IMG/VR virus record: IMGVR_UViG_3300046092_000062
Location: 1-64,000 of that record
Length of the DNA stretch: 64,000 nt
Strand: one strand, 5' to 3'
Part shown: positions 22,878 to 64,000 of the stretch, piece by piece
Layout: each line of letters begins with the position of its first letter
Numbering within the stretch: the first letter of the stretch is position 1
The notes under the pieces: model-generated
What the model saw: the letters and a program-made list of their open reading frames with translations, nothing else
Databases searched by the model: none
What the model was told of the DNA's origin: nothing
Made by a program: the position numbers and the translations under genes

Positions 22878-24500
22878 ATGCACCATAACGTAAAATCAAT
22901 TACCATCGTGGGCGGTGGATCAAGTGGATGGATGACAGCAGCAGCAATAGCTAGGCTTCTACCCAACATTAAACTAACTCTAGTTGAGAGTCCCAATATC
23001 CCTACTATTGGTGTAGGCGAAAGTACTATTGGACATATTAATCAATACCTAGCATTAATTGGTATTAAAGACGAAGACTGGATGGCAGCATGTAATGCAA
23101 CATACAAGACCAGTATCAAGTTCATTGACTTTAGAGAAAACCCAAAAGAAGAACCACACAAGTTTCATTACCCATTTGGTATCCTGGACTTTACAGATAA
23201 GCCACGCGGCCCAATGGAATGGTTTTTAGCAGCAGCCGATCGCGGCAATCTTGATCCCAGTAACTTTGCAGAGTTTTATCACGACAGTATTTTAATGACT
23301 GACAAGAATAAAATTACACGCAACGAGGATTACAAAATTCGTGGGTTTAACTTTAAAGAAGATACAGCGTACCACATGGATGCTACCTTATTCGGCGCAT
23401 GGCTCAGAGATAACCTGTGCTTACCAAGTGGTATGACTCACATTCTAGATACCGTCACTGACGTTGTGCAACGTGAAGATGGATCGATTGAAAAAGTTGG
23501 AACAGAGAACAGCGGATACCTTGAAGCAGACTTGTTTGTTGATTGTACTGGATTCAAGAGCTTGCTATTAGACCAAACTCTCAATGAGCCATTTACTAGC
23601 TTCCACGACACACTGTTAAATGATAGAGCAGTAGCTACAGTAATTCCCTACATTGACAAAGAAGCAGAAATGGAAAACTACACAAGCTGCACTGCCATTG
23701 AGTGCGGCTGGGTATGGAACATTCCATTATGGAATCGCATTGGCACAGGCTATGTTTATAGCAGCAAACATGCCACTGAAGAAGAAGCAGAAGCGCAATT
23801 CCGCAAACACCTAAAGAGCAATCGCATGATGTTTCCGGATGCAGAACGTGCAGACACATGTGAGCTAAGACATATTAAGATCAAGCACGGCGTCCATGAA
23901 CGTGCATGGGTCAAAAACGTAGTAGGTATCGGACTTGCTAACGGTTTCATTGAGCCACTGGAAAGTACAGGACTGATGCTAACGCACGAAGGGATTGTTA
24001 AATTATGCAATACTCTGTTAATGCGTAACGGCGTTGTTAGCAACTACGATGTAGATTTGTTTAACTATGGATTCCAAGAACAGATTCTAGGATTCAAAGA
24101 CTTTATCAGTCAGCACTATGCACTAAGCTGCCGCAACGATACTCCATACTGGAAAGAAGTTACAGGCGATTTAACGTATTCACGAGCAATGGGCGGGACT
24201 ATTAACTTGTCTGGGCTAGCACACGATGTACGGTCAGCGTCCGATTTGGGTATGCGTATGCACCGCACCCGAACATTTGATAACAACATGGGCGGGATTT
24301 TGTATATTGCAGCAGGACAGGGATACAATCCAGTTGAGCCAAACTACATAAGATACGAGGACACAAGACGCCACGAGTCGCCTGAACTGCGTGCCACTAT
24401 CTACGATAAATGGCTAGAGCACAAAGAAGAAGTAATGGCACACATCGAGACTTTGCCGACGCACTACCAATTCTTATACGATAACTTCTATAGCAAGTAA
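22878..24500 (+). CDS. Flavin-dependent (tryptophan) halogenase family protein
   Basis: GGGSSGWM, IGVGES, FVDCTGF, GWVWNIPL (WxWxIP), GFIEPLESTG. Confidence 0.92.
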   Translation: MHHNVKSITIVGGGSSGWMTAAAIARLLPNIKLTLVESPNIPTIGVGESTIGHINQYLALIGIKDEDWMAACNATYKTSIKFIDFRENPKEEPHKFHYPFGILDFTDKPRGPMEWFLAAADRGNLDPSNFAEFYHDSILMTDKNKITRNEDYKIRGFNFKEDTAYHMDATLFGAWLRDNLCLPSGMTHILDTVTDVVQREDGSIEKVGTENSGYLEADLFVDCTGFKSLLLDQTLNEPFTSFHDTLLNDRAVATVIPYIDKEAEMENYTSCTAIECGWVWNIPLWNRIGTGYVYSSKHATEEEAEAQFRKHLKSNRMMFPDAERADTCELRHIKIKHGVHERAWVKNVVGIGLANGFIEPLESTGLMLTHEGIVKLCNTLLMRNGVVSNYDVDLFNYGFQEQILGFKDFISQHYALSCRNDTPYWKEVTGDLTYSRAMGGTINLSGLAHDVRSASDLGMRMHRTRTFDNNMGGILYIAAGQGYNPVEPNYIRYEDTRRHESPELRATIYDKWLEHKEEVMAHIETLPTHYQFLYDNFYSK

Positions 24501-53989: not shown

Positions 53990-54064
53990 GCACCAATAGC
54001 TTAATGGTAAAGCAGCCGACTCATAATCGGTCGAGTCTTGGTTCAATTCCAAGTTGGTGCACCA
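53990..54064 (+). tRNA. tRNA-CAT (Ile2-like loop CTCATAA)
   Basis: Cloverleaf, encoded CCA; anticodon arm resembles Ile2 tRNAs. Confidence 0.85.
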
Positions 54065-54069
54065 AATAT

Positions 54070-54144
54070 CTGGCGTTAGTACAATGGATAGTACAATGAG
54101 CTTCTACCTCATGAATGTGGGTTCGATTCCTGCACGCCGGACCA
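54070..54144 (+). tRNA. trnR: tRNA-Arg(TCT)
   Basis: ATGAG-CTTCTAC-CTCAT; CCA. Confidence 0.9.
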
Positions 54145-54154
54145 AACAAATTGC

Positions 54155-54183
54155 TTGACACTCTTGTGTTAAGCATATATAAT
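54155..54183 (+). promoter_or_regulatory. Consensus sigma70 promoter
   Basis: TTGACA-N17-TATAAT. Confidence 0.92.
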
Positions 54184-54192
54184 AGAAGTATT

Positions 54193-54276
54193 GCGAGAGT
54201 GGAGAAATGGTATACTCAGGAGACTTAAAATCTCCCGTCGAAAGGCATACGGGTTCGAGTCCCGTCTCTCGCACCA
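54193..54276 (+). tRNA. trnL: tRNA-Leu(TAA), long variable arm
   Basis: GGAGA-CTTAAAA-TCTCC; CCA. Confidence 0.92.
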
Positions 54277-54293
54277 AATGGTAAAAGTTGTAG

Positions 54294-54322
54294 TTGACAC
54301 AGAAAGACAAGTGTCATACAAT
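54294..54322 (+). promoter_or_regulatory. Sigma70 promoter
   Basis: TTGACA-N17-TACAAT. Confidence 0.85.
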
Positions 54323-54397
54323 TGAGGCTTGTAACAAACAAAGAAACGAAAGTTTAAACAAAGAGATAAATAAATTTACCAGATGTTGTTAAAGAGG

Positions 54398-54426
54398 TTG
54401 ACAACAAAGGTAAATAAACATACAAT
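54398..54426 (+). promoter_or_regulatory. Sigma70 promoter of the main tRNA operon
   Basis: TTGACA-N17-TACAAT; ATG 6 nt downstream. Confidence 0.85.
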
Positions 54427-54432
54427 ACTAAC

Positions 54433-54582
54433 ATGATGCAAAACATTCTTCATTCACTTAAACAACAACAGTCTACCTTAGGCACAGTGGCCTATTGGTC
54501 AGCGATGTCGTTTAGTTTGAATACGAATGATCGCGCACCGGAGATTAGTTTAGGGTTCTTAGAGGGAAGTGGTTACGCTTAA
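54433..54582 (+). CDS. Putative leaderless leader peptide (49 aa) of tRNA operon attenuator
   Basis: ATG at predicted +1; MMQNILHSLKQQQSTLGTVAYWSAMSFSLNTNDRAPEISLGFLEGSGYA*. Confidence 0.55.
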   Translation: MMQNILHSLKQQQSTLGTVAYWSAMSFSLNTNDRAPEISLGFLEGSGYA

Positions 54583-54608
54583 CAAGTAGTAGCTAACAAA
54601 CTTAAAGG

Positions 54609-54638
54609 ACCCTAGGATTAAAAACCCTAGGGTTTTTT
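54609..54638 (+). terminator. Intrinsic terminator / attenuator hairpin
   Basis: ACCCTAGG-loop-CCTAGGGT + TTTTT; left arm can alternatively pair with 54551-54560. Confidence 0.85.
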
Positions 54639-54655
54639 GTTTTAAGGAAGAAATT

Positions 54656-54808
54656 TTGAAGGTAGACTTTAATAAAAGAATTCGTGAAGTAAAGTTTACT
54701 GCCGAGCATACGCTAACAACAGAACAACGTAATACGTTGATTCAAGAAAAGTTAGAACGTGCAAGGAAGGAACTAGAAAGCCGTAAAAAGTTTTCACTTC
54801 ACGCATAG
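54656..54808 (+). CDS. Small hypothetical protein (50 aa, TTG start)
   Basis: AAGGAAG SD; charged helical sequence; first ORF after attenuator. Confidence 0.45.
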   Translation: MKVDFNKRIREVKFTAEHTLTTEQRNTLIQEKLERARKELESRKKFSLHA

Positions 54809-54969
54809 ACAGTGTTAGATAAGTGCTATATGCCCAGGTAACGAGGACCTGAAAGAACACTATAATAATCTTTAAACGGGCGGACAGTTGGATGAAATGC
54901 TGGCGGTAACAGCAGAGTACAAATAACTGGTTAGGGCATTGACCCTAACATATCCTGTAGCAATACAGG

Positions 54970-55048
54970 GTATTCACAAACAAACTAGACGAATCAATTA
55001 TATGATACATTATTGTTGGCAGCGACCCACTAGTTTGTTTATGAATAC
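54970..55048 (+). ncRNA. Long closed-stem RNA element
   Basis: GTATTCACAAACAAACTAG / CTAGTTTGTTTATGAATAC, one C-A mismatch. Confidence 0.55.
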
Positions 55049-55128
55049 CTTAAGGATGAAGATGATAGATAGATTCTGATTCTATACTATGTCCGAGCCC
55101 AGCGCCGGAAACCTTAAGGGATATATTT

Positions 55129-55202
55129 GGGCTGTTCGTATAATGGGATTACACTGGCCTTGCACGTCAGTTATTGGGGTTCGATCCCCCAACGGTCCAC
55201 CA
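55129..55202 (+). tRNA. trnA: tRNA-Ala(TGC)
   Basis: Loop CTTGCAC; G3:U70; CCA. Confidence 0.92.
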
Positions 55203-55207
55203 AATTT

Positions 55208-55282
55208 GGATGTATAGCAAAGTGGTAATGCACTACCTTCATACGGTAACTATCGCTAGTTCGAATCTAGCTACATCCACCA
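55208..55282 (+). tRNA. tRNA-CAT (Met or Ile2)
   Basis: Loop TTCATAC; CCA. Confidence 0.85.
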
Positions 55283-55284
55283 AG

Positions 55285-55431
55285 TTTTGAGATAGACGTA
55301 GGACTTGAGTCCCACATAGCATAGTGTAGTGTCTGCTACATGATAACGCCAGGCTGCTATAGTGGTTGATAAACTCGTCCATACGAGACAATCCAGTGAG
55401 TCCTCCCAGGAGGATAGTTGGGCTCTCAAAA
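55285..55431 (+). ncRNA. Multi-hairpin structured RNA
   Basis: TTTTGAGA...TCTCAAAA closing stem; inner hairpins GGACTTGAGTCC, CTCGTCCATACGAG, TCCTCCCAGGAGGA. Confidence 0.5.
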
Positions 55432-55439
55432 ATCTATTC

Positions 55440-55524
55440 GGGGTTTGAATACGTAACATATAGGACGAAACTGCGTGTAACTCACGTGGGCAGTATCAGG
55501 TGAAAGCCCTGACAAACTCCACCA
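55440..55524 (+). ncRNA. tRNA-like RNA with Ala-type acceptor and non-canonical arms
   Basis: GGGGTTTG/CAAACTCC-ACCA, G3:U70; 5-bp T-stem with TGAAAGC loop; no 7-nt anticodon loop. Confidence 0.6.
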
Positions 55525-55530
55525 ATTTTT

Positions 55531-55605
55531 AGGCTTGACATGAACTGGTGTTCATACTATCCTTACACGATAGATTAGGGAGTTCAATTCTCCACTAGCC
55601 CACCA
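55531..55605 (+). tRNA. trnV: tRNA-Val(TAC)
   Basis: CTATC-CTTACAC-GATAG; weak acceptor; CCA. Confidence 0.8.
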
Positions 55606-55612
55606 AGTTAAT

Positions 55613-55686
55613 CTGGGTATAGGATAATGGTAGTCGACGAGTCTTGGATACTCGAGGCGCTGGTTCGATTCCAGCTACCCAGACCA
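55613..55686 (+). tRNA. trnP: tRNA-Pro(TGG)
   Basis: CGAGT-CTTGGAT-ACTCG (A37); CCA. Confidence 0.9.
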
Positions 55687-55691
55687 ATCAC

Positions 55692-55780
55692 GGGGAGTTA
55701 TGCAGGCTGGGCCTGTCACGGTCTTGAAAACCGATGGACTGCGAAAGTGGTTAGAGTTCGATTCTACTATCTCCCCGCCA
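55692..55780 (+). tRNA. trnS: tRNA-Ser(TGA)
   Basis: Loop CTTGAAA, long variable arm, G73. Confidence 0.9.
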
Positions 55781-55786
55781 ATATAT

Positions 55787-55860
55787 TGCTCGTTAGCTCA
55801 ATGGTAGAGCAGTCGACTGATAATCGACCGACACAAGTTCGATTCTTGTACAAGCAACCA
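55787..55860 (+). tRNA. trnI: tRNA-Ile(GAT)
   Basis: GTCGA-CTGATAA-TCGAC; CCA. Confidence 0.9.
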
Positions 55861-55868
55861 AAGTTAAT

Positions 55869-55952
55869 GGATACTCGACACAGTTGGAGAGGTGTGGCTG
55901 GCTGTAACCCAGTTCGTAAAGTGAGTAGGTTCGATTCCTACAGTATCCACCA
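55869..55952 (+). tRNA. trnY: tRNA-Tyr(GTA)
   Basis: Loop CTGTAAC, long variable arm; CCA. Confidence 0.9.
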
Positions 55953-55959
55953 AGTTTAT

Positions 55960-56036
55960 ATACCAGTAGTTCCAATTGGCAGAACAGCAGTCTCCAAAAT
56001 TGCGTGTTGGGAGTTCGAATCTCTCCTGGTATGCCA
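55960..56036 (+). tRNA. trnW: tRNA-Trp(CCA) with A24
   Basis: Loop CTCCAAA, G73; D-stem GTTC/GAAC. Confidence 0.92.
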
Positions 56037-56041
56037 TATAC

Positions 56042-56117
56042 GCCCCTGAAACCTTTAATGGATGAGGTCCTGTCTTGTAAGCAGGAGAAGTCGGTTCGAT
56101 TCCGGACTGGGGCACCA
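56042..56117 (+). tRNA. trnT: tRNA-Thr(TGT)
   Basis: CCTGT-CTTGTAA-GCAGG; CCA. Confidence 0.88.
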
Positions 56118-56123
56118 AGTTAT

Positions 56124-56202
56124 TCCGAGAAATCCAAGCAAGGTGCAGGGACCTGACTGTTAATCAGTGGTTAGGTGGGTTCGATCCCCACACTCGGAGC
56201 CA
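56124..56202 (+). tRNA. trnN: tRNA-Asn(GTT)
   Basis: Loop CTGTTAA, G73; CCA. Confidence 0.88.
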
Positions 56203-56207
56203 ATCAT

Positions 56208-56379
56208 GTCTAGTTGGAAATGAAAGTAACCCAAAGGGAGCGACCTGAACAATCGCTGTCTAGTACGCTTACAAAGTAATTGTCCTGACTGTTCGACCCA
56301 AGAGGTGTTAAACCCGTAGATTCAGTTCCTACGCTCTCGCTCAAGGGATGTCGCTGTGTCACAGCAGCACTAGGCTCCA
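56208..56379 (+). ncRNA. 172-nt RNA closed by an acceptor-like stem ending in TCCA
   Basis: GTCTAGT/ACTAGGC-T-CCA; interior not a cloverleaf. Confidence 0.45.
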
Positions 56380-56387
56380 ATTTTTAT

Positions 56388-56462
56388 CACTGTGTTTAGC
56401 GGGTCTGCGCAAACCTTGCCAATAGATGGGAATGTGTATTTCGACGTACACCACAGTGGCCA
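56388..56462 (+). pseudogene. Degenerate tRNA (anticodon arm not assignable)
   Basis: CACTGTG/CACAGTG-G-CCA and T-arm present; D and anticodon stems poorly paired. Confidence 0.55.
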
Positions 56463-56469
56463 ATTTTGT

Positions 56470-56543
56470 TCGGGGATGGTGTAATGGTAACACAACAGAC
56501 TTTGACTCTGTCGTTCCGGGTTCGAGCCCCGGTTCCCGTGCCA
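56470..56543 (+). tRNA. trnQ: tRNA-Gln(TTG)
   Basis: ACAGA-CTTTGAC-TCTGT; CCA. Confidence 0.9.
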
Positions 56544-56550
56544 GTTTTAT

Positions 56551-56625
56551 AGTTCCTTAGTTCAGCGGTAGAACGCTACATTGACATTGTAGAGGTCAGT
56601 GGTTCGACACCACTAGGAACTACCA
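56551..56625 (+). tRNA. trnV: tRNA-Val(GAC)
   Basis: CTACA-TTGACAT-TGTAG; CCA. Confidence 0.92.
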
Positions 56626-56628
56626 AAT

Positions 56629-56704
56629 GCAACTTTAGCTGATGTGGTCATAGCGGTGGTCTGAAGAGCCATTGAAGCAGGTTCGATCCCTGCAGGTTGC
56701 ACCA
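56629..56704 (+). tRNA. trnF: tRNA-Phe(GAA)
   Basis: Loop CTGAAGA (G37); CCA. Confidence 0.9.
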
Positions 56705-56714
56705 AAATTTAAAT

Positions 56715-56791
56715 GCCCCGTTACGCTAATTGGTAGTGCGGATTCTCTCAAAAGGAGTTGGCTGTCTGTTCGAATCAGACACGGGGTACCA
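56715..56791 (+). tRNA. trnL: tRNA-Leu(CAA), short variable loop
   Basis: Loop CTCAAAA; 5-nt variable region; CCA. Confidence 0.85.
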
Positions 56792-56797
56792 TACAAT

Positions 56798-56874
56798 GCC
56801 TTCGTACGCTAATTGGTAGTGCGGATAGTTTTAGAAACTGTTGGTTGGGGGTTCGAATCCGCCCGAAGGTACCA
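56798..56874 (+). tRNA. trnL: tRNA-Leu(TAG), short variable loop
   Basis: Loop TTTAGAA; same D-arm as neighbours; CCA. Confidence 0.85.
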
Positions 56875-56877
56875 CAT

Positions 56878-56954
56878 GCCCCTGTACGCTAATTGGTAGT
56901 GCGGACAGACTTAAAATCTTTTGGTTGCAGGTTCGAATCCAGCCAGGGGTACCA
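56878..56954 (+). tRNA. trnL: tRNA-Leu(TAA), short variable loop
   Basis: Loop CTTAAAA; same D-arm; CCA. Confidence 0.85.
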
Positions 56955-56957
56955 AAT

Positions 56958-56986
56958 TTGACACTTAATGAAATGGCTGCTATAAT
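56958..56986 (+). promoter_or_regulatory. Consensus sigma70 promoter (second at 57053-57081, TTGTCC-N17-TACAAT)
   Basis: TTGACA-N17-TATAAT. Confidence 0.92.
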
Positions 56987-57181
56987 ACACACATGTTAAG
57001 AAATTAGCATAAAGTGCAGAGTAGCATAAAAACAACAGTTAGAAAATAACAGTTGTCCAATAAAGAAATTGGTGCTACAATACATACATGTTAAACAAAC
57101 AACGCAGCGCAGTGATCGTACTGTAATGCTAACAGTCTTTAAAAAGATACTGTCATATATCCCTGTTAAGTTCAGGGCTCT

Positions 57182-57262
57182 ATATGCAAACACATTAATT
57201 AACCTGGAGTGCGGTCACAGGGCATCGCAAGGTGTGGTAGCCGTGTTAATGTGTTTACATAT
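57182..57262 (+). ncRNA. Closed-stem RNA element, copy 1
   Basis: ATATGCAAACACATTA ... TAATGTGTTTACATAT. Confidence 0.6.
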
Positions 57263-57265
57263 AGT

Positions 57266-57340
57266 GGAGCTATCGTCTATCGGTTAGGACATCTGGTTTT
57301 CATCCAGGCAAGCGGGGTTCGATTCCCCGTAGCTCTTCCA
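57266..57340 (+). tRNA. trnE: tRNA-Glu(TTC)
   Basis: Loop TTTTCAT; CCA. Confidence 0.88.
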
Positions 57341-57414
57341 AGTTTTTACATTGTTTAAACCGCGGCTGATTTTAAAGTCGGATGAAGGCGAAACTAACAA
57401 TGTGATTCTATTTT

Positions 57415-57559
57415 GTGCTTCATACTATCAATTGGGAGAGCATTACCTAAAACACTAAGTAGGACATCGACAGTAAAGGCCAGTGGCCTAGGATGTGTAA
57501 GCCGTAAGTATACGGTATGTTCAGGTGATGTGTGTAGGTTCGAATCCTACTGATGTACA
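57415..57559 (+). ncRNA. tRNA-like RNA with ~75-nt insert in the anticodon loop
   Basis: Acceptor GTGCTTC/GATGTAC-A (G3:U70), TTACCT/AGGTGA stem around insert, GTAGG-TTCGAAT-CCTAC T-arm; CCA not encoded. Confidence 0.6.
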
Positions 57560-57567
57560 CAAGTTAT

Positions 57568-57719
57568 GCGGGGTCTCACATGGTGTGGCTGAAGAGATTG
57601 ATCACTCGGAGGCGAATGCGAAAATGCGAGGCCTTATGCAAGCAACCCCAAAGAGTAATTCCGAGTAAGGCACTGTAAGCATAAGGGCTTTCAGGGTTCG
57701 AATCCCACGCCCTGCACCA
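57568..57719 (+). ncRNA. tRNA-like RNA with pseudoknotted insert replacing the anticodon loop
   Basis: GCGGGGT/GCCCTGC-A-CCA (G3:U70), TTCGAAT T-loop; ACTCGGA/TCCGAGT and CCTTATGC/GCATAAGG helices cross. Confidence 0.65.
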
Positions 57720-57787
57720 ATCAAGACACATCAAAGTAGCGACTATTGCTGGAGGCGGTAGCACGTAATTAGTGTGTCGAGTTTTTC

Positions 57788-57926
57788 GTGGTAAGTCTGG
57801 AGACAAGTTATTTGACTGTATGCGTAGCAGGATTGCAAACCCGAGGGGCATATGGCGATGGGAAGTGATATCACCCGTTTGTAAAAACAGATGACTAGTT
57901 GGGTTCAACTCCCAATTACTACACCA
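57788..57926 (+). ncRNA. tRNA-like RNA (139 nt) with Ala-type acceptor and long insert
   Basis: GTGGTAA/TTACTAC-A-CCA (G3:U70); TTGGG-TTCAACT-CCCAA T-arm. Confidence 0.65.
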
Positions 57927-58000
57927 TATGCAAACACATTATACAAACCTGAATCAGCAATAGCATTGCAAAGGTTTAAATGTGTAGTGTGTTTACATAT
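57926..58000 (+). ncRNA. Closed-stem RNA element, copy 2
   Basis: Same ATATGCAAACACATTA / TGTGTTTACATAT ends as 57182, different interior. Confidence 0.6.
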
Positions 58001-58002
58001 TG

Positions 58003-58183
58003 TGTTGTTAAGGCTGATGACGGCAATCTGAAAGCAGTCTGAAATCTGACCCTGAAACAAAGTAGCTTTGCCGAGCGAATGTAGACGGAGTCTCTATAGT
58101 GTAGTGGAAGCACACCGGCATAATACGCCGGGGGCCTAGGTTCGATTCCTAGTAGGGTTTATTAGATATCAGCCTTAACAGCA
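58003..58183 (+). ncRNA. Long hairpin RNA enclosing a tRNA-like domain with AAT anticodon
   Basis: TGTTGTTAAGGCTGAT/ATCAGCCTTAACAGCA outer stem; inner D-arm, CCGGC-ATAATAC-GCCGG, CTAGG-TTCGATT-CCTAG; no CCA. Confidence 0.55.
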
Positions 58184-58195
58184 TAAAGAAATAAT

Positions 58196-58281
58196 GGGGA
58201 TACGGCGCAGTTGGAGAGGCGCGGCAGACTGTAAATCTGTTTCCACTGGATGAGTTGGTTCGAATCTAACTATCCCCACCA
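58196..58281 (+). tRNA. trnY: tRNA-Tyr(GTA)
   Basis: Loop CTGTAAA, long variable arm; CCA. Confidence 0.92.
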
Positions 58282-58282
58282 A

Positions 58283-58740
58283 GAATACTAAGACAACACT
58301 TAGTAAGATGAGTAGACGGAAACCGACCCGGGAGAGAATTCCCGGGCTTCAATAATACGAATCACCGGCGAAACGCTGCGGGTCCCGCCCGCTGTATTAT
58401 TGACGAACGATAAGCAAAGTCGGTCCAGTAGGGGTAAGAAAAGTGTTGTTAGCGGAAAGAGCTGCAACGAGACAGAAGTTAAGCGGGCATAGGCCGACAG
58501 TTTAACGCCGTGTATTCTCGAACTAATTCAAGAATTGATCGGAAAGCAAGAGCCGAAGAGTAGACACTAGCGAATGGCGGGCTGCGTTCGCATAAGTTGG
58601 GATAACTGACTAGTAGGGTAAGAGTCCCTAGTATGCCTCCTAATTCACAAATGTAAGATAGTTGCAAATGCGTCCTGCAGGTAAGTTTGCAACCGTAACA
58701 TCACAGACGGGCGACTCTGTGTAAGAAATACGACCCAGAA
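58283..58740 (+). ncRNA. Large (~450 nt) multi-domain structured ncRNA candidate
   Basis: No credible ORF; many hairpins plus long-range ACAACACTT/AAGTGTTGT and CAATAATAC/GTATTATTG helices, between tRNAs. Confidence 0.6.
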
Positions 58741-58746
58741 ATTTAT

Positions 58747-58822
58747 GCTCCATTAGCTCAATTGGGAGAGCGCGACACTGTCACTGTCGAGGTAAGCGGA
58801 TCGAAACCGCTATGGGGCGCCA
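58747..58822 (+). tRNA. trnD: tRNA-Asp(GTC)
   Basis: CGACA-CTGTCAC-TGTCG; CCA. Confidence 0.92.
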
Positions 58823-58829
58823 GTTTTAT

Positions 58830-58904
58830 ATCCTGTTAGATTATCGGTTAGATCAACAGCCTTTCAAGTTGTAGAGACGGGTTCGATTCCCGTACAGGAT
58901 GCCA
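58830..58904 (+). tRNA. trnE: tRNA-Glu(TTC)
   Basis: Loop CTTTCAA, G73; CCA. Confidence 0.9.
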
Positions 58905-58909
58905 GTTAT

Positions 58910-58996
58910 GGATAGTAGTGTGCATGGTGCCGAGTTGGTTTGCTAAACCGATCTACTGCGAAAGCGGTAACAGTTCGATTCTGTTTCTATCCTCCA
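58910..58996 (+). tRNA. trnS: tRNA-Ser(GCT)
   Basis: Loop TTGCTAA, long variable arm; CCA. Confidence 0.88.
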
Positions 58997-59003
58997 AGTT
59001 TTA

Positions 59004-59078
59004 GCGGGTAAGGTGTTTACGGATACACACTAGTCTTCCAAACTTGAGTAGTCGGTTCGATACCGACTACCCGCTCCA
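59004..59078 (+). tRNA. trnG: tRNA-Gly(TCC)
   Basis: Loop CTTCCAA, U73; CCA. Confidence 0.9.
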
Positions 59079-59085
59079 AGTTAAT

Positions 59086-59160
59086 GCCGTGGTAGCTCTC
59101 TGGGAGGGTGCCTCACTGTCGATGAGTTTTAGGCGGGTTCGATTCCCGTCCACGGCGCCA
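59086..59160 (+). tRNA. trnD: tRNA-Asp(GTC)
   Basis: Loop CTGTCGA (G37); CCA. Confidence 0.88.
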
Positions 59161-59163
59161 GTT

Positions 59164-59366
59164 TTGTAAGTGTCAGCAAGAGAAAGTCACGCTATACAAT
59201 ATTCTTCGAAGGTGTTGTATAGTAAAAGGTTAATGGGTTCGAATCCCACCGTGCGCGGGCCATTTGGAGGCTGTACTGGACAAGTATTCCTAGTGGCAGA
59301 CTGCCCCCGTCCGGACTTGTTAATTCGGGTGAAGCGTTGAGATAACAGCGGCTCAACTACTTACAA
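59164..59366 (+). ncRNA. ~200-nt structured RNA with an internal T-loop hairpin
   Basis: TTGTAAGT/ACTTACAA closing stem; GGG-TTCGAAT-CCC at 59235-59247; CTATACAA/TTGTATAG hairpin. Confidence 0.55.
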
Positions 59367-59375
59367 ATTCAATTT

Positions 59376-59450
59376 ACCCGGTTAGCTCAGTGGTAGAGCA
59401 GCGGCTTGATAAGCCGTTGGTCGCAAGTTCAAATCTTGCATCGGGTACCA
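59376..59450 (+). tRNA. trnI: tRNA-Ile(GAT)
   Basis: GCGGC-TTGATAA-GCCGT; CCA. Confidence 0.92.
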
Positions 59451-59459
59451 AAATTTATA

Positions 59460-59487
59460 TTGACATACACAGTTTGTCATATATAAT
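59460..59487 (+). promoter_or_regulatory. Sigma70 promoter
   Basis: TTGACA-N16-TATAAT. Confidence 0.85.
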
Positions 59488-59495
59488 AGTGTTAT

Positions 59496-59571
59496 TGGCA
59501 TATAGCTCAGTTGGTAGAGCGCTTGACTGTTAATCAAGATGTCCCTGGTTCGAGCCCAGGTTTGCCAGCCA
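59496..59571 (+). tRNA. trnN: tRNA-Asn(GTT)
   Basis: CTTGA-CTGTTAA-TCAAG; CCA. Confidence 0.93.
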
Positions 59572-59577
59572 AATTTC

Positions 59578-59651
59578 GCCCCATTAGTTAAATGGTAGAA
59601 CACCGGTTTTGTAATCCGGGGATAGCAGTTCGATTCTGTTATGGGGCACCA
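59578..59651 (+). tRNA. trnT: tRNA-Thr(TGT)
   Basis: Loop TTTGTAA; CCA. Confidence 0.9.
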
Positions 59652-59658
59652 AGGTTAT

Positions 59659-59732
59659 AGCGGGTAGGGCGGCCACCACTCCAGTCTCATAAGCTCGGAG
59701 CATCGCAAGTTCAAATCTTGCACCCGCATCCA
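59659..59732 (+). tRNA. tRNA-CAT with 1:72 mismatch and reduced D-arm (initiator-like?)
   Basis: Loop CTCATAA; A1/A72 unpaired; CCA. Confidence 0.7.
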
Positions 59733-59737
59733 TATAA

Positions 59738-59813
59738 GGGGGATTAGCTCATTTGGGAGAGCGGCTGCTTTGCAAGCAGTAGGTGACCAGTTCGATCCTG
59801 GTATCCTCCACCA
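59738..59813 (+). tRNA. trnA: tRNA-Ala(TGC)
   Basis: Loop TTTGCAA; G3:U70; CCA. Confidence 0.93.
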
Positions 59814-59924
59814 ATATTCACTGAACCAGCAGTAAGCTGGAATGTATAGTAGACGAGAATTAGTGTACTGCTATATGTCTGACACGGACTTGAGTGGACA
59901 GCCCACAGTGTTGTAAATCATATT

Positions 59925-60001
<77 letters not shown>

Positions 60002-60005
60002 ATTT

Positions 60006-60080
60006 GCGTCTGTAGTACAATGGAAAGTACACTAGGCTACGAACTTAGGAATGGTGGTTCGATTCCATCCAGACGCACCA
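60006..60080 (+). tRNA. trnR: tRNA-Arg(ACG)
   Basis: Loop CTACGAA; CCA. Confidence 0.92.
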
Positions 60081-60098
60081 ATCAACAAAGGAAATACA

Positions 60099-60527
60099 AT
60101 GTCAGCATTCAAAGTATTGCGCGGTGAGCGCATTAACGGAATCTTTCTAGGCAACGACAGCTGGGCATTAGTATTCCGTACAGTCAACGGCAAGTATTTT
60201 CGTTTTGACACTCAGAACGATTGTTGCAACAGCGTGTGGTTCAATCACATTAATGGTGCTACTATCCTAGGTGAAGGCAACAGCTTTGACCTATTGCGCG
60301 GCGCATTAGTGACTGAAACAGAAGACAAGGGTTGGGGCGATAATCGCGAAGAAGACGGATACGAAGTAGTTCAAGACGGGTTCTGGACTATCAAAACCGA
60401 CCGCGGCTACATTGATATTGAAGTGCGTAACAGCCACAATGGCTACTACGGCGGATCAGTTAAGCACATCGAAGACTTTGAGCTTGACCAAATCGAAGGC
60501 TTAAAGCAAGTTACGGAAGATTTTTAA
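60099..60527 (+). CDS. Hypothetical protein
   Basis: AAGGA SD; DCCNSVWF and RNSHNGYYGG motifs. Confidence 0.7.
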   Translation: MSAFKVLRGERINGIFLGNDSWALVFRTVNGKYFRFDTQNDCCNSVWFNHINGATILGEGNSFDLLRGALVTETEDKGWGDNREEDGYEVVQDGFWTIKTDRGYIDIEVRNSHNGYYGGSVKHIEDFELDQIEGLKQVTEDF

Positions 60528-60537
60528 AAGGGTAGTT

Positions 60538-60747
60538 ATGTCAAATAGTAGAAACACTTCGTCAGCAGCAGTAGAGCAAGTAGGCAACCGATTTGATTTG
60601 GTGCTTATTGCAAGTGCGCGAGCACGTGAACTCAAGCGAGGACATGCTGCAAAAGTAAGTGGTGCCGGCGGCATTACTGCAACAGTGTTGAAAGAAATTG
60701 AAGAAGGAAAAATTGGCCGCGAGTACTTGAAAAAGTTGCGCGACTAA
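60538..60747 (+). CDS. rpoZ: RNA polymerase omega subunit
   Basis: AVEQVGNRFDLVLIASARAREL..G....V.....AT.L.EIEEGKI. Confidence 0.88.
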   Translation: MSNSRNTSSAAVEQVGNRFDLVLIASARARELKRGHAAKVSGAGGITATVLKEIEEGKIGREYLKKLRD

Positions 60748-60754
60748 GAGTTAT

Positions 60755-60829
60755 GGAGTTGTTAGTTTAGTGGCAAAACCGCGGGTTGTGATTCCGCTAT
60801 CACGGGTTCGATTCCCGTACTTCTCCCCA
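60755..60829 (+). tRNA. trnH: tRNA-His(GTG)
   Basis: Encoded G-1:C73; loop TTGTGAT; CCA. Confidence 0.92.
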
Positions 60830-60938
60830 GAGCCTCGCCGTTGCTAGTGGCGTATAATAGGATAAATTATTAGCACACAGACCCCGTCTTTGGGCAATCG
60901 GACGTTAAACGGTTGTCCACCAATTCATTAAATACTGT

Positions 60939-61997
60939 ATGAAGATAATTGATTGCGATAGCCATTACCTACCACCTACAGTATTTGACCATGTACCAGA
61001 GCATCTAAGGCATTTGTTGCCTACGTTTGATTTCTCGGTTGACGGAAAGTTAAATCGCGTAAATTTTGAAATTGATCCAGTTAAAATTAGTGAAGGTAAG
61101 CCGCCTGAGTCGTTTGGGCAGACTGCCGGAGTAACTAACATTGACAGCAGGATTGAGGATTTTGCTAAGTTAAAAATCACAAAGCAACTGTTGTGTCCGC
61201 AAGAGCTTGCTATGCGGTTTAACTATTCTGTTGAACCAGAACTAGCCGCTGCAATGTGCAGAAGCTACAATATAGAGATTAAGAAAGTGGTTGACGCACA
61301 TCCTGACAAGTTCTTTGCAACTGCACTAGTACCATTGCAGGACATGAAGGCAGCAACAGTTGAACTCAATTGGGCTATACGTCACGGATTTAAAGCAGTA
61401 TATCTTGATAACTCGTTTATATCTGCAGATGGCACAAGTATGCCTACCATGTGTATGCCTGATATTAGTGATCTAATTGAAATCTGTGCAATGCAGAGAA
61501 TAACAATTTATTTTCATAGCATGATGCACCACGTGTTTCCCTTTGACGATCATTATCGCAAATTGCAAAGATTTTTACCCGGGTCAATCCAGCTAAACAT
61601 ATACAGCTTATTGATGTCTGGTATTTTTGATCGTTACCCTGTAATGCAGGTAGTATTCGCAGAAGGGGCAGATGTACATGCGATGCGATCGTACAATACA
61701 GTGCAGGGAGTATTTGAGCGTAAGCTGCCAGACGTACAAATGAAAAATCATCCGCTAGTGTATTTTAAAAATAACATCAGCTTTACAGTTGACATAGAGA
61801 ATACTGCTCTAATGCAACTGCTAATAAAAACTTTCGGAAGCGAACGATTGCTGTTCAGTACAGATTATCCGCACGATGACGAGTCGGGACTAAACCAATT
61901 GCACGACGTGGACGATTTGATTGCATTAAAATTAAGCAATAATGATTTAGAGAACATCGCTTACAAAAACGCCGAACGAATTTTTCGGTTAGTATAG
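60939..61997 (+). CDS. Amidohydrolase-2 family metal-dependent hydrolase/decarboxylase
   Basis: IIDCDSHY, YFHSMMH, LLFSTDYPHDD, NAERIF. Confidence 0.88.
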   Translation: MKIIDCDSHYLPPTVFDHVPEHLRHLLPTFDFSVDGKLNRVNFEIDPVKISEGKPPESFGQTAGVTNIDSRIEDFAKLKITKQLLCPQELAMRFNYSVEPELAAAMCRSYNIEIKKVVDAHPDKFFATALVPLQDMKAATVELNWAIRHGFKAVYLDNSFISADGTSMPTMCMPDISDLIEICAMQRITIYFHSMMHHVFPFDDHYRKLQRFLPGSIQLNIYSLLMSGIFDRYPVMQVVFAEGADVHAMRSYNTVQGVFERKLPDVQMKNHPLVYFKNNISFTVDIENTALMQLLIKTFGSERLLFSTDYPHDDESGLNQLHDVDDLIALKLSNNDLENIAYKNAERIFRLV

Positions 61998-62003
61998 AAT
62001 TGT

Positions 62004-62077
62004 TGGGGATTAGTTAAACGGTATAACTACGGATTTTGATTCCGTCATTAGTGGTTCGATTCCACTATCCTCTGCCA
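62004..62077 (+). tRNA. trnQ: tRNA-Gln(TTG)
   Basis: ACGGA-TTTTGAT-TCCGT; CCA. Confidence 0.9.
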
Positions 62078-62224
62078 AAATTTCATATCCTGTACGAACG
62101 GCAGCTCTTGCTTTTCAGGATAATCTCGTGTAAAATGTTTAACACAAGAGAAGCTCTTAGCATCGGAATAAGTTCCGTTGCCGAGTTTAAGTAATTCATC
62201 GAATCCAGGATTGGGTTTGCTCAT
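62048..62224 (-). CDS. Small antisense late protein (58 aa)
   Basis: Start preceded by TAAATA-CAGT, the spacing seen for other late genes; 3' end overlaps tRNA-Gln. Confidence 0.4.
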   Translation of the reverse strand: MSKPNPGFDELLKLGNGTYSDAKSFSCVKHFTRDYPEKQELPFVQDMKFWQRIVESNH

Positions 62225-62249
62225 ACTGTATTTAACACAAGGAAACAAA

Positions 62250-62753
62250 ATGCCCTGGATCCAAAACGTAGCACGTAGCGATGTCACTAAAGGGTTTCAC
62301 ATCAACCCCGGTGATAACGCTATGTTGATTCAAATCGTTGACTGCGGCAGCGAATTTCCTACTCCCCTTTACAAGTTTAAAGAAGCTCATCAATTTGAGT
62401 TTTTAGATGTAGAGGAAAAGGACTACGTTCTTGAAGAAGAAATGAAGTGCAGTCACGAACAAGCCGCAGAGCTAGTTCGTTTGTTGCAACATGCACTAGA
62501 GAATCGCATGAACGTTATTGTTCATTGCCATGCTGGTGTTTGCCGCAGCGGTGCAGTATGTGAAGTTGGAGTCATGCTTGGCTTTGATGACACTGAAGCA
62601 TTTCGTGCTCCTAACTTGCTAGTCAAGCATCGCATGATGAAGCAGCTGGGTTGGACGTATGATGAGAACGAAGAGCCAACGATCAATGGTCAACCATATC
62701 AATACAGCGCAGGCGGGATCATTTTACCCCCAAGTCACGAAGGTGATATTTAA
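62250..62753 (+). CDS. Cys-dependent (PTP/DSP-type) phosphatase
   Basis: HCHAGVCRS = HCxxGxxR signature; AAGGA SD. Confidence 0.85.
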   Translation: MPWIQNVARSDVTKGFHINPGDNAMLIQIVDCGSEFPTPLYKFKEAHQFEFLDVEEKDYVLEEEMKCSHEQAAELVRLLQHALENRMNVIVHCHAGVCRSGAVCEVGVMLGFDDTEAFRAPNLLVKHRMMKQLGWTYDENEEPTINGQPYQYSAGGIILPPSHEGDI

Positions 62754-63094
62754 TGCACAAAATCTACGTTGATGTTCCGTACGAGTACAACTATGTGTAC
62801 CGAGTTGATCATGATGAGTCCACTGGTCCAGAAGTGCTAGCAAGGGACTTTGGGGTAAAGTTTGCGTTTATTTGCAACGCTGCTCAGAGATTCAGCAACC
62901 CCGAAGGACTTGGAGCAGTGGGCAATACAGGTGATGCTCACGTGGTATGGCTTGAGTCGGAGAAAGACGAATTGTTCTTTCTAATCAAGTCCGGATTTAC
63001 CAAGTTAAATAAAGATGTAGTTGAACTATTCTTGAAAGCAAGATTGGAAGCTATGCGATTAAAAGAGAGGAATGATTATGAAACGTGTAATTGA
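62753..63094 (+). CDS. Hypothetical protein
   Basis: 113 aa ORF, TAATG overlap. Confidence 0.55.
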   Translation: MHKIYVDVPYEYNYVYRVDHDESTGPEVLARDFGVKFAFICNAAQRFSNPEGLGAVGNTGDAHVVWLESEKDELFFLIKSGFTKLNKDVVELFLKARLEAMRLKERNDYETCN

Positions 63095-63749
63095 GGTCCG
63101 TGCCGCAGAAGGTGGCGAAGACAGTAAACTATTTGTAAAAGACTTGGCACAAGCCTACATTAAATTTGCACACAGCAAAGGCTGAACTAGCCGCCTGATA
63201 AATGAGTATCTTGGCGAAGTTCATATCTTAGTCGAGGGTGCTGATTTATCTGGCTTATACAACGAGCCAGGTGGACACCGAATACAGCGTGTACCACCAA
63301 CAGAGCGAAAAGGACGAGTACATACCAGTACTGTTACTGTCGCTGTTGTTGATCCAAGTGTGCCGACCACTACCATAAAAGAATCTGATTTGCGGATTGA
63401 ATGGTACAGCGGAACAGGCGCAGGAGGACAACACCGTAACAAGCACCAAAACAGTGCCCGCGTTACGCACATACCTAGTGGCACAGTAGTAACAGCACAG
63501 TGTCGCAGTAGGGAAAATAGTTTGGCAGAAGCTATGCAAACTATTCGAGAAAGAGTTGACAAGATAACAAAAGACTGTTATAATAACAACTTAGCAAGCA
63601 ACAGAAAGCAACAAGTTGGTTCAGGGATGCGAGGAGACAAAATTCGCACATACCGCTTTCAGGACGATACAGTTAAAGATCACGTAAGTGACAAGACTGC
63701 AAGCGTTAAGAAAGTGTTAGCCGGCAACTTTGACTTACTTTGGAATTAA
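63078..63749 (+). CDS. prfA: RF1-type peptide chain release factor lacking domain 1, interrupted by in-frame TGA at codon 36 (63183-63185)
   Basis: EVRAAEGG..., HRIQRVPPTE.KGRVHTS (PxT), GAGGQH.NK (GGQ), IRTYRF; one frame from ATG 63078 with one TGA. Confidence 0.85.
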
Positions 63750-63763
63750 AAAGGAAAATTGAC

Positions 63764-63787
63764 ATGAAACGTTCAGGTAAACGATAG
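63764..63787 (+). CDS. Mini-ORF MKRSGKR ending in TAG followed by a hairpin
   Basis: AAGGAA SD 7 nt upstream; stem GTGTCATCC/GGATGGCAC starts at the G of TAG. Confidence 0.4.
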   Translation: MKRSGKR

Positions 63788-63849
63788 TGTCATCCTAGAC
63801 CCCCGTATGGTCCTGGATGGCACGTAAAAGAAAAATATTTACGATCCAT

Positions 63850-63924
63850 CCACAGCAAACTTTGCTGGCGAAGTACCCGGCTCTTACCCGGACTAACAGA
63901 GTTCGATTCTCTGGCTGTGGACCA
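63850..63924 (+). tRNA. trnK: tRNA-Lys(CTT)
   Basis: Loop CTCTTAC; CCA. Confidence 0.85.
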
Positions 63925-63927
63925 TAT

Positions 63928-64000
63928 GGGGGTATAACTTAGCGGCTAAAGTATCTGGCTTTTAACCAGAGAACCAGAGTTCGATTCTCTGTGCCCCTAC
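63928..64000 (+). tRNA. trnK: tRNA-Lys(TTT), 3' end at window edge
   Basis: TCTGG-CTTTTAA-CCAGA. Confidence 0.9.

Follow-up and report, generated by a model that had tools for sequence, protein, structure and literature searches.

In-frame UGA with a 3' hairpin in a jumbo-phage release-factor gene as a candidate readthrough site, with Hirsh-type phage tRNA-Trp genes as possible helpers

We analyse here a tRNA-Trp gene of an uncultivated freshwater jumbo phage, together with a release-factor (RF) gene that lies within the same tRNA array, 7 kb downstream, and that is interrupted by an in-frame TGA. The reading that we favour, with a probability of roughly 60%, is that positions 55960-56036 hold a genuine tRNA-Trp, that the UGA of the RF gene would be a hairpin-aided programmed readthrough site, and that the phage tRNA-Trp copies with A24, the base of the Hirsh suppressor, would be helpers at this site rather than its dedicated partner. 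The window, i.e. the whole stretch of DNA that was analysed (64,000 nucleotides), is the first 64 kb of a virus record of 320,767 bp (320.8 kb, G+C 43.8%), which is rated about 92% complete.

The phage, its tRNA array and its tRNA-Trp genes

The window encodes tail sheath, tail tube and large terminase proteins, and its sequence is matched by freshwater metagenome runs. The terminase has its nearest cultured relatives among jumbo phages of the PA5oct-like (53% identity) and Atu_ph07-like groups, with identities of about 50%. Within the phages of GenBank only tRNA-sized matches were obtained, and no close relatives. A tryptophan-halogenase-like gene is present at 22878-24500 of the window (PHROG E 8e-152). 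Outside the window, at genome positions 180876-181270 (L082:460-846), there is a two-piece (permuted) tmRNA with the tag ANDEQFLMVA, which scores 116 bits with the Rfam model beta_tmRNA and 112.6 bits with tmRNA_permuted. This beta-type two-piece tmRNA hints at a betaproteobacterial host; among 151 genomes sampled from the class to which a Rubrivivax genome belongs, none matched the phage tmRNA above the family cut-off.

The features of the tRNA array and of its first tRNA-Trp gene are as follows.

53990..64000, + strand: in-window part of the tRNA array, 35 tRNA genes (ARAGORN, Rfam)
54155..54183, + strand: perfect sigma-70 promoter-like site TTGACA-17-TATAAT (12/12 pattern match), about 1.8 kb 5' of tRNA-Trp
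55960..56036, + strand: tRNA-Trp(CCA), copy 1 of 2 in the genome (ARAGORN; Rfam RF00005, 49.9 bits; aligned with E. coli trpT)
55984, + strand: A24, the Hirsh position, which pairs with U11 (55970); read directly, with the numbering taken as anticodon position minus 10
55994..55996, + strand: anticodon CCA, in the loop CUCCAAA with A37 and A38 (ARAGORN, sequence)
56958-56986, + strand: perfect sigma-70 promoter-like site (12/12 pattern match), between tRNA-Trp and the RF gene
59460..59487, + strand: perfect sigma-70 promoter-like site (12/12 pattern match), between tRNA-Trp and the RF gene
63556-63584, + strand: perfect sigma-70 promoter-like site (12/12 pattern match), within the 3' part of the RF gene

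The whole array consists of 48 tRNAs and extends past the window to genome position 76407. The original prediction treated it as a single tRNA operon, and this part is not borne out. Several separate consensus promoter matches are found within the array, namely four perfect TTGACA-N16/17-TATAAT matches on the + strand, two of which separate tRNA-Trp from the RF gene, and this arrangement suggests several units under one promoter class rather than one operon. The weaker promoter matches are in total as numerous as expected from shuffles. Two protein-coding regions were also noted between the tRNAs, an amidohydrolase gene at 60939-61997 (Pfam 2.9e-22) and a weak dual-specificity phosphatase-like ORF at 62178-62753.

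The tRNA-Trp gene has the acceptor sequence ATACCAG, U8 and A9, the D-stem strand GTTC (55969-55972), the D loop CAATTGGCA and the opposite strand GAAC (55982-55985), and it ends with the discriminator G73 followed by an encoded CCA end. TrpRS recognises its tRNA by the anticodon CCA and the discriminator G73. With a cloverleaf score of 49.9 bits, well above the RF00005 gathering score of 29, the CCA anticodon and G73, the gene is a genuine bacterial-type elongator tRNA-Trp(CCA). The sequence and ARAGORN thus agree with the original prediction on the D stem GTTC/GAAC and on A24 at 55984 paired with U11. The E. coli trpT gene, which we fetched and aligned, has the D stem GTTC/GAGC, that is U11.G24, and so the G24 that had been stated for E. 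coli is correct as well. Outside the acceptor and anticodon stems, the phage and E. coli tRNAs are near-identical.

The part of the tRNA that matters most for this comparison is the hinge, defined as residues 9-12, 23-26, 44 and 45 (PMC13092985). At these residues both phage copies of tRNA-Trp are exactly equal to the E. coli G24A Hirsh mutant. The second copy lies outside the window, at genome positions 70614-70690 (51 bits), and its D arm and variable loop are identical to those of the first. That the G24A change lets a tRNA-Trp with an unchanged CCA anticodon read UGA is established in the literature, as had been stated; the added hydrogen bond stabilises the distorted tRNA on the ribosome (PMC5311926; PMC11805395). 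Another option considered was the mechanism based on a 4-bp anticodon stem (PMC13092985), which is excluded here, as the anticodon stem has the normal 5 bp in both phage tRNA-Trp copies.

The release-factor gene, its UGA codon and the hairpin

The following features of the RF gene are used below.

63078..63749, + strand: release-factor gene of RF1 type, domain 1 absent; 223 codons, including the GGQ and PPT motifs (Pfam PCRF 3e-22, RF-1 9e-21)
63183..63185, + strand: in-frame TGA at codon 36, aligned with a conserved RF1 Trp (KGW)
63197..63250, + strand: conserved 18-bp hairpin, a candidate readthrough stimulator, 11-12 nt 3' of the UGA (synonymous minimum, covariation)

From the ATG at 63078 to 63749, the TGA at 63183-63185 is the sole interruption of the RF frame, and the context GGC-TGA-ACT named in the original prediction is indeed present, at 63180-63188. 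In comparison with solved PDB structures, the RF protein scores 149 bits with RF1 and 87 bits with RF2, and it contains the GGQ motif and the RF1-type PxT motif (PPT) with its surrounding residues. The alignment does not begin before residue 87 of the Thermotoga RF1, or 112 of that of E. coli, and domain 1 is therefore absent.

About 265 relatives of this RF are found in IMG/VR. The window and 80 fetched IMG/VR loci (67-97% identity) have TGA at codon 36 in 81 of 81 cases, and in the set of 93 sequences, which is the 81 enlarged by 11 more loci from IMG/VR and by the source contigs of three database proteins, the TGA is kept in all 93 (83 distinct coding sequences). The codons beside it vary synonymously (GGC/GGT/GGA before, ACT/GCT/ACA/ATT after), and in 93/93 sequences the residues on both flanks of the TGA are conserved in one frame, with synonymous variation. 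The contigs of the three database proteins (82%, 64% and 64% identity) translate only with TGA read as W. The conserved Trp position and the TGA in all 93 sequences examined indicate that the UGA must be read through; as it is located at codon 36, inside a domain, only the readthrough product could be functional. In the literature searched, whose coverage is incomplete, we found no phage RF with an internal UGA.

Public protein collections (P0001-P0120) hold the full-length RF, of 222-225 amino acids with W at codon 36, and on longer contigs the RF has been called as a fragment of 176-187 amino acids. The full-length entries exist because the gene callers used code 4 (TGA=Trp) on short contigs. 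Metatranscriptome contigs span the RF gene and have no indel listed near the TGA; these come from 94-95% identical relatives and could be of DNA origin, so that they are evidence neither of expression nor of editing. In three metatranscriptome runs, the summed contig depth rises from about 5-60 to 82-1110 at window positions 63753-63800, in the spacer between the RF stop and the tRNA-Lys at 63850. The jump is carried by very short contigs, and Rfam gives nothing there; the signal may come from an abundant small RNA or from a sequence that recurs in many phages.

The database entries just described are also the one point in favour of a simpler view, namely that the phage or its host uses code 4 and that TGA is plainly Trp. 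Its probability is negligible in view of the stop usage. A greedy set of 394 non-overlapping ORFs, which covers 86% of the genome, ends in TAA in 241 cases (61%), in TGA in 131 (about a third) and in TAG in 22. In the 21 confident genes of the window, TGG occurs 112 times and TGA in frame, by construction, not once, and reading TGA as sense extends the long-ORF coverage by no more than reading TAG as sense does. Furthermore, tRNA(UCA) is absent from the genome and from the 80 RF loci, and a pattern search of four complete relatives and the phage genome gave none. What the opal-suppressor pattern matched was a tRNA-Leu(CAA), one non-tRNA site and a tRNA whose loop has 8 nt. A tRNA with an 8-nt anticodon loop (AUUUUCAA) occurs in the relative G001 (L359:1488-1562, - strand); ARAGORN assigns it the four-base anticodon tttc, and it resembles the window tRNA-Glu at 58830.

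Among the TGA-ended ORFs that have a longer first segment and a long in-frame continuation, no other convincing in-frame-TGA gene was found; these candidates are adjacent genes, in which the TGA is directly followed by ATG, or antisense artefacts. With TGA as an ordinary stop, no tRNA(UCA) and no other gene of this kind, the RF UGA would be a single-site recoding event. A separate observation concerns UAG. The genome encodes, outside the window at 187515-187589 (L083:516-587), a tRNA with the anticodon CUA, of the amber-suppressor type (Rfam 66.7 bits), alongside an RF1-type gene whose product would terminate at UAG. In the 22 TAG-ended ORFs of the 394, the median distance to the following in-frame stop is 4.5 codons, compared to 10 for TAA and TGA, and these close stops behind TAG look like back-up stops.

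Judged from the sequence comparisons, the strongest signal at the RF site is the hairpin, whose arms pair 63197-63215 with 63231-63250. When the 83 distinct RF genes are aligned by codon, the normalised synonymous variability falls to 0.30-0.35 at codons 37-46, right after the TGA, which is the low of the whole gene (median 0.80), and a second dip to 0.35-0.40 is seen at codons 51-61; the two dips are the two arms of the hairpin. In the window, the hairpin folds with -27 kcal/mol (z = -3.4). It was taken from this fold and then tested by pair counts, which means that the source of the structure is one of the tested, related sequences; in 73 distinct sequences its pair cells are paired in 87.1% of cases, as compared to 32-45% after a shift of the partner by 1-3 columns. 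For the same sequences, the covariation score is 0.242, while shuffles give 0.172, and there are 58 double-change cells, while shuffles give 18; for both measures none of the 500 shuffles reaches the observed value. The compensating changes include AU to GC (columns 35/66), AU to UA (32/69) and UA to AU (26/75). Even the most distant RF members have kept a hairpin, with a largely different sequence, and throughout the set the stem is conserved and the apical pairs and the loop are variable. An RNAalifold calculation on the RF site yielded no consensus structure. We infer that the hairpin is probably a stimulator of readthrough at the UGA. It starts slightly farther from the stop codon than the classical readthrough and frameshift stimulators, and it could also act otherwise, for example in the processing of RNA or the binding of a protein.

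The layout of a UGA closely followed by a hairpin is shared with bacterial SECIS elements. It could be, then, that the RF UGA is not read as Trp at all: the hairpin might direct selenocysteine insertion, translation might terminate and reinitiate, or a truncated product might be functional. This group of explanations is highly improbable. Selenocysteine is disfavoured because the apical loop varies and RF1 has Trp, not Cys or Sec, at the aligned position; no tRNA-Sec was found in the genome or in the 80 RF loci. Reinitiation is unlikely because the conserved spacer after the TGA has no in-frame ATG, GTG or TTG. The amino-acid conservation on both sides of the TGA, in one frame and in all 93 sequences, speaks against the whole group.

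The relation between A24 and the UGA

To see how special A24 is, tRNA-Trp(CCA) genes were collected with a pattern (anticodon loop CTCCAAA, 14 nt, T loop) that finds only 5-nt variable loops and is hence biased; the following counts are thus from a biased sample of phylogenetically related sequences, and those for bacteria and archaea were taken after correcting 1-nt start offsets.

Bacteria and archaea, 114 genes: C11:G24 in 102, U11.G24 in 7, A24 in 5
Viral contigs, 92 genes: A24 in 32 (35%)
RF-clade loci, 26 genes: C11:G24 in 2, U11.G24 in 1, A24 in 22 (85%); the remaining gene (L004) has an irregular D stem

A24 in tRNA-Trp is thus unusual in bacteria and frequent in the RF phage clade. 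The five bacterial cases are cyanobacteria-like sequences and one Tissierella, and the two sampled betaproteobacteria, Burkholderia and Rubrivivax, both have C11:G24. The statement that some wild-type bacterial tRNA-Trp carry A24 agrees with these five and also with a published catalogue, in which natural A24 (and A9C) tRNA-Trp(CCA) of bacteria are listed as possible UGA readers (PMC13092985). In the RF clade, the A24 genes are spread over several different D-stem backgrounds.

It is important to note that U11:A24 is a general trait of these AT-leaning phage arrays and not peculiar to tRNA-Trp. When all tRNAs are counted, it is found in 354 of 853 at the RF-clade loci (41%), in 245 of 869 in the viral sample and in 17 of 258 at bacterial loci. 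Several other RF-clade isotypes have it just as often as tRNA-Trp, namely Arg-TCT (25/29), Gly-TCC (21/25), His (19/22), Thr-GGT (20/25) and Val-GAC (17/21). Since 16 of the 49 tRNAs of the phage genome have U11:A24, its presence in tRNA-Trp, taken on its own, is not beyond chance. The enrichment in the RF clade (22/26), compared to the viral sample (32/92) and to bacteria (5/114), may nevertheless reflect some selection for A24.

The co-variation of A24 tRNA-Trp with the RF stop fails in both directions. Every RF-clade genome has the RF TGA, and the 11:24 state of its tRNA-Trp varies. The clearest case is G001, a complete 364-kb genome with terminal repeats that has the RF TGA and the hairpin; its sole tRNA-Trp is U11.G24, as in wild-type E. 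coli, and no tRNA(UCA) was found in it. In L061 and L071 the tRNA-Trp near the RF gene is C11:G24. For the converse, five contigs with an A24 tRNA-Trp were chosen outside the RF clade (G161-G165). No RF homologue was found in G161 (172 kb, complete), G162 (343 kb, 99%), G163 (a 476-kb provirus) or G165 (221 kb), all of which are at least 97% complete, and G164 has only a short GGQ-domain ORF without stops. In G161 and G162, the D arms of the tRNA-Trp genes are near-identical and belong to the type seen in the window. In view of G001 and of the A24 phages that lack the RF, A24 is neither necessary for nor specific to the RF UGA. For the proposal that the A24 tRNA reads this UGA, what stands is the UGA at a Trp position, the hinge equal to that of the Hirsh mutant and the lack of a UCA tRNA; what does not stand is the A24-specific link, which on the present comparison is weak. 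A24 may still boost the readthrough.

These data bear on two opposite explanations. According to the one, the A24 tRNA-Trp is a dedicated suppressor that is selected for and required by the RF UGA, such that expression of the array gates the RF. The Hirsh hinge, the A24 enrichment on several D-stem backgrounds, the two tRNA-Trp copies in the phage genome and the position of the RF gene inside the array would all fit, but G001, with only a U11.G24 tRNA-Trp, and the C11:G24 genes of L061 and L071 speak against a requirement, and the four A24 phages without the RF, together with the equally high U11:A24 frequency in other isotypes, speak against dedication. In addition, general UGA suppression would extend a third of the phage proteins. 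We regard this explanation as distinctly unlikely.

According to the other, A24 is a neutral by-product of AT drift in the tRNA stems, the phage tRNA-Trp decodes only UGG, and host tRNA-Trp together with the hairpin reads the RF UGA. The overall U11:A24 frequencies, the uncoupling of A24 from the RF across genomes and the hairpin as the strongest signal at the site agree with it. On the other hand, U:A occurs in 85% of the clade's tRNA-Trp, compared to an array mean of 41%, and A24 raises UGA reading in the body of E. coli tRNA-Trp, which the phage tRNAs share. Because of the latter, a tRNA with the Hirsh hinge and no effect at all at UGA would be surprising, and we consider this explanation unlikely too.

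Proposed mechanism and comparison with known systems

In the explanation that we prefer, with A24 copies as helpers at a hairpin-aided site, the RF UGA would be a programmed readthrough site to which the hairpin gives its specificity. Such specificity would be required in a phage in which about one gene in three has TGA as its regular stop. The most likely decoder would be Trp-tRNA(CCA), via a C34-A mismatch and in competition with the host RF2. The two A24 tRNA-Trp genes would probably raise the readthrough, both by providing more tRNA-Trp and by their Hirsh-type hinge. They would be helpers at most, neither dedicated nor required, considering that the RF UGA is retained also with a phage tRNA-Trp of the G24 type.

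Of the release factors RF1 and RF2, only the latter recognises UGA. With an RF2-specific stop in the gene of an RF1-type product, the site may, speculatively, sense a shortage of RF2, and the extra RF1-like factor would then take over termination at UAA, which accounts for 61% of the phage stops. This is a hint of interplay between RF2 and RF1-type termination in the infected cell. The wider proposal, that freshwater jumbo phages of a widespread clade gate a domain-1-less RF1 via an RF2-specific UGA and a 3' hairpin, with Hirsh-type tRNA-Trp as a booster in trans, is tentative, and we would call it possible rather than probable.

The Hirsh suppressor is the textbook case of a mutation in the body of a tRNA that alters decoding, and it is known as a laboratory mutant (E. 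coli tRNA-Trp G24A, trpT Su9). The phage tRNA-Trp has in common with it the unchanged CCA anticodon, the U11-A24 pair and residues 9-12, 23-26 and 44-45, and there is almost no difference in the variable loop (GUGUU) or in the T arm. The phage tRNA has one D-loop nucleotide more and different acceptor and anticodon stems, and, unlike the mutant, it is a natural gene of a phage. The combination of natural Hirsh-hinge tRNAs with a gene that needs UGA as Trp makes it testable whether nature uses the Hirsh mechanism. If the proposed role as a booster is true, this would be a natural, virus-encoded instance of that mechanism, coupling host-cell tRNA supply and RF2 availability to termination capacity.

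In the phage Q-beta, the A1 protein is made from the coat gene by leaky UGA readthrough with ordinary tRNA-Trp(CCA). The phage RF resembles this case in that the full product would require UGA to be read as Trp by tRNA-Trp(CCA). In Q-beta, the result is a C-terminal extension of a complete protein, whereas the UGA of the RF is at codon 36 within a domain and is followed by a conserved hairpin. The natural A24 tRNA-Trp of bacteria (PMC13092985) are, like those of the phage, wild-type genes with the Hirsh base; the phage genes differ from them in the normal 5-bp anticodon stem, in being phage-encoded and in having a candidate UGA target in the same genome.

Phage-encoded release factors are already known (PMC7162821), but in the literature searched, with incomplete coverage, no phage RF1-type gene has been described with a conserved internal UGA and a 3' hairpin. 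The closest cellular counterpart is prfB, which encodes RF2 and has an RF2-specific UGA early in the gene (bioRxiv 10.1101/2024.09.24.614795), as the phage RF gene does. In prfB, a +1 frameshift takes place at CUU UGA with an upstream SD-like element, while in the phage gene the 0 frame would be kept at GGC UGA ACU, with a hairpin on the 3' side. Furthermore, RF2 (SPF) reads its own UGA, whereas the phage product is RF1-type (PPT), so that any feedback would be cross-regulation and not autoregulation.

The layout itself is most similar to the stop-codon readthrough of eukaryotic viruses with an extended 3' stem-loop (PMC3159437), with which the phage RF shares the UGA, the short spacer, the long conserved stem-loop and the suppressed synonymous variation. 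Our literature search, again of incomplete coverage, gave no bacterial or phage case of this UGA-spacer-stem-loop readthrough layout. Unlike the eukaryotic viral cases, the phage RF would be translated with bacterial ribosomes and release factors. The gene, with the UGA and the hairpin in 93 sequences drawn from numerous freshwater samples, clearly qualifies as a candidate for structure-stimulated readthrough on bacterial ribosomes.
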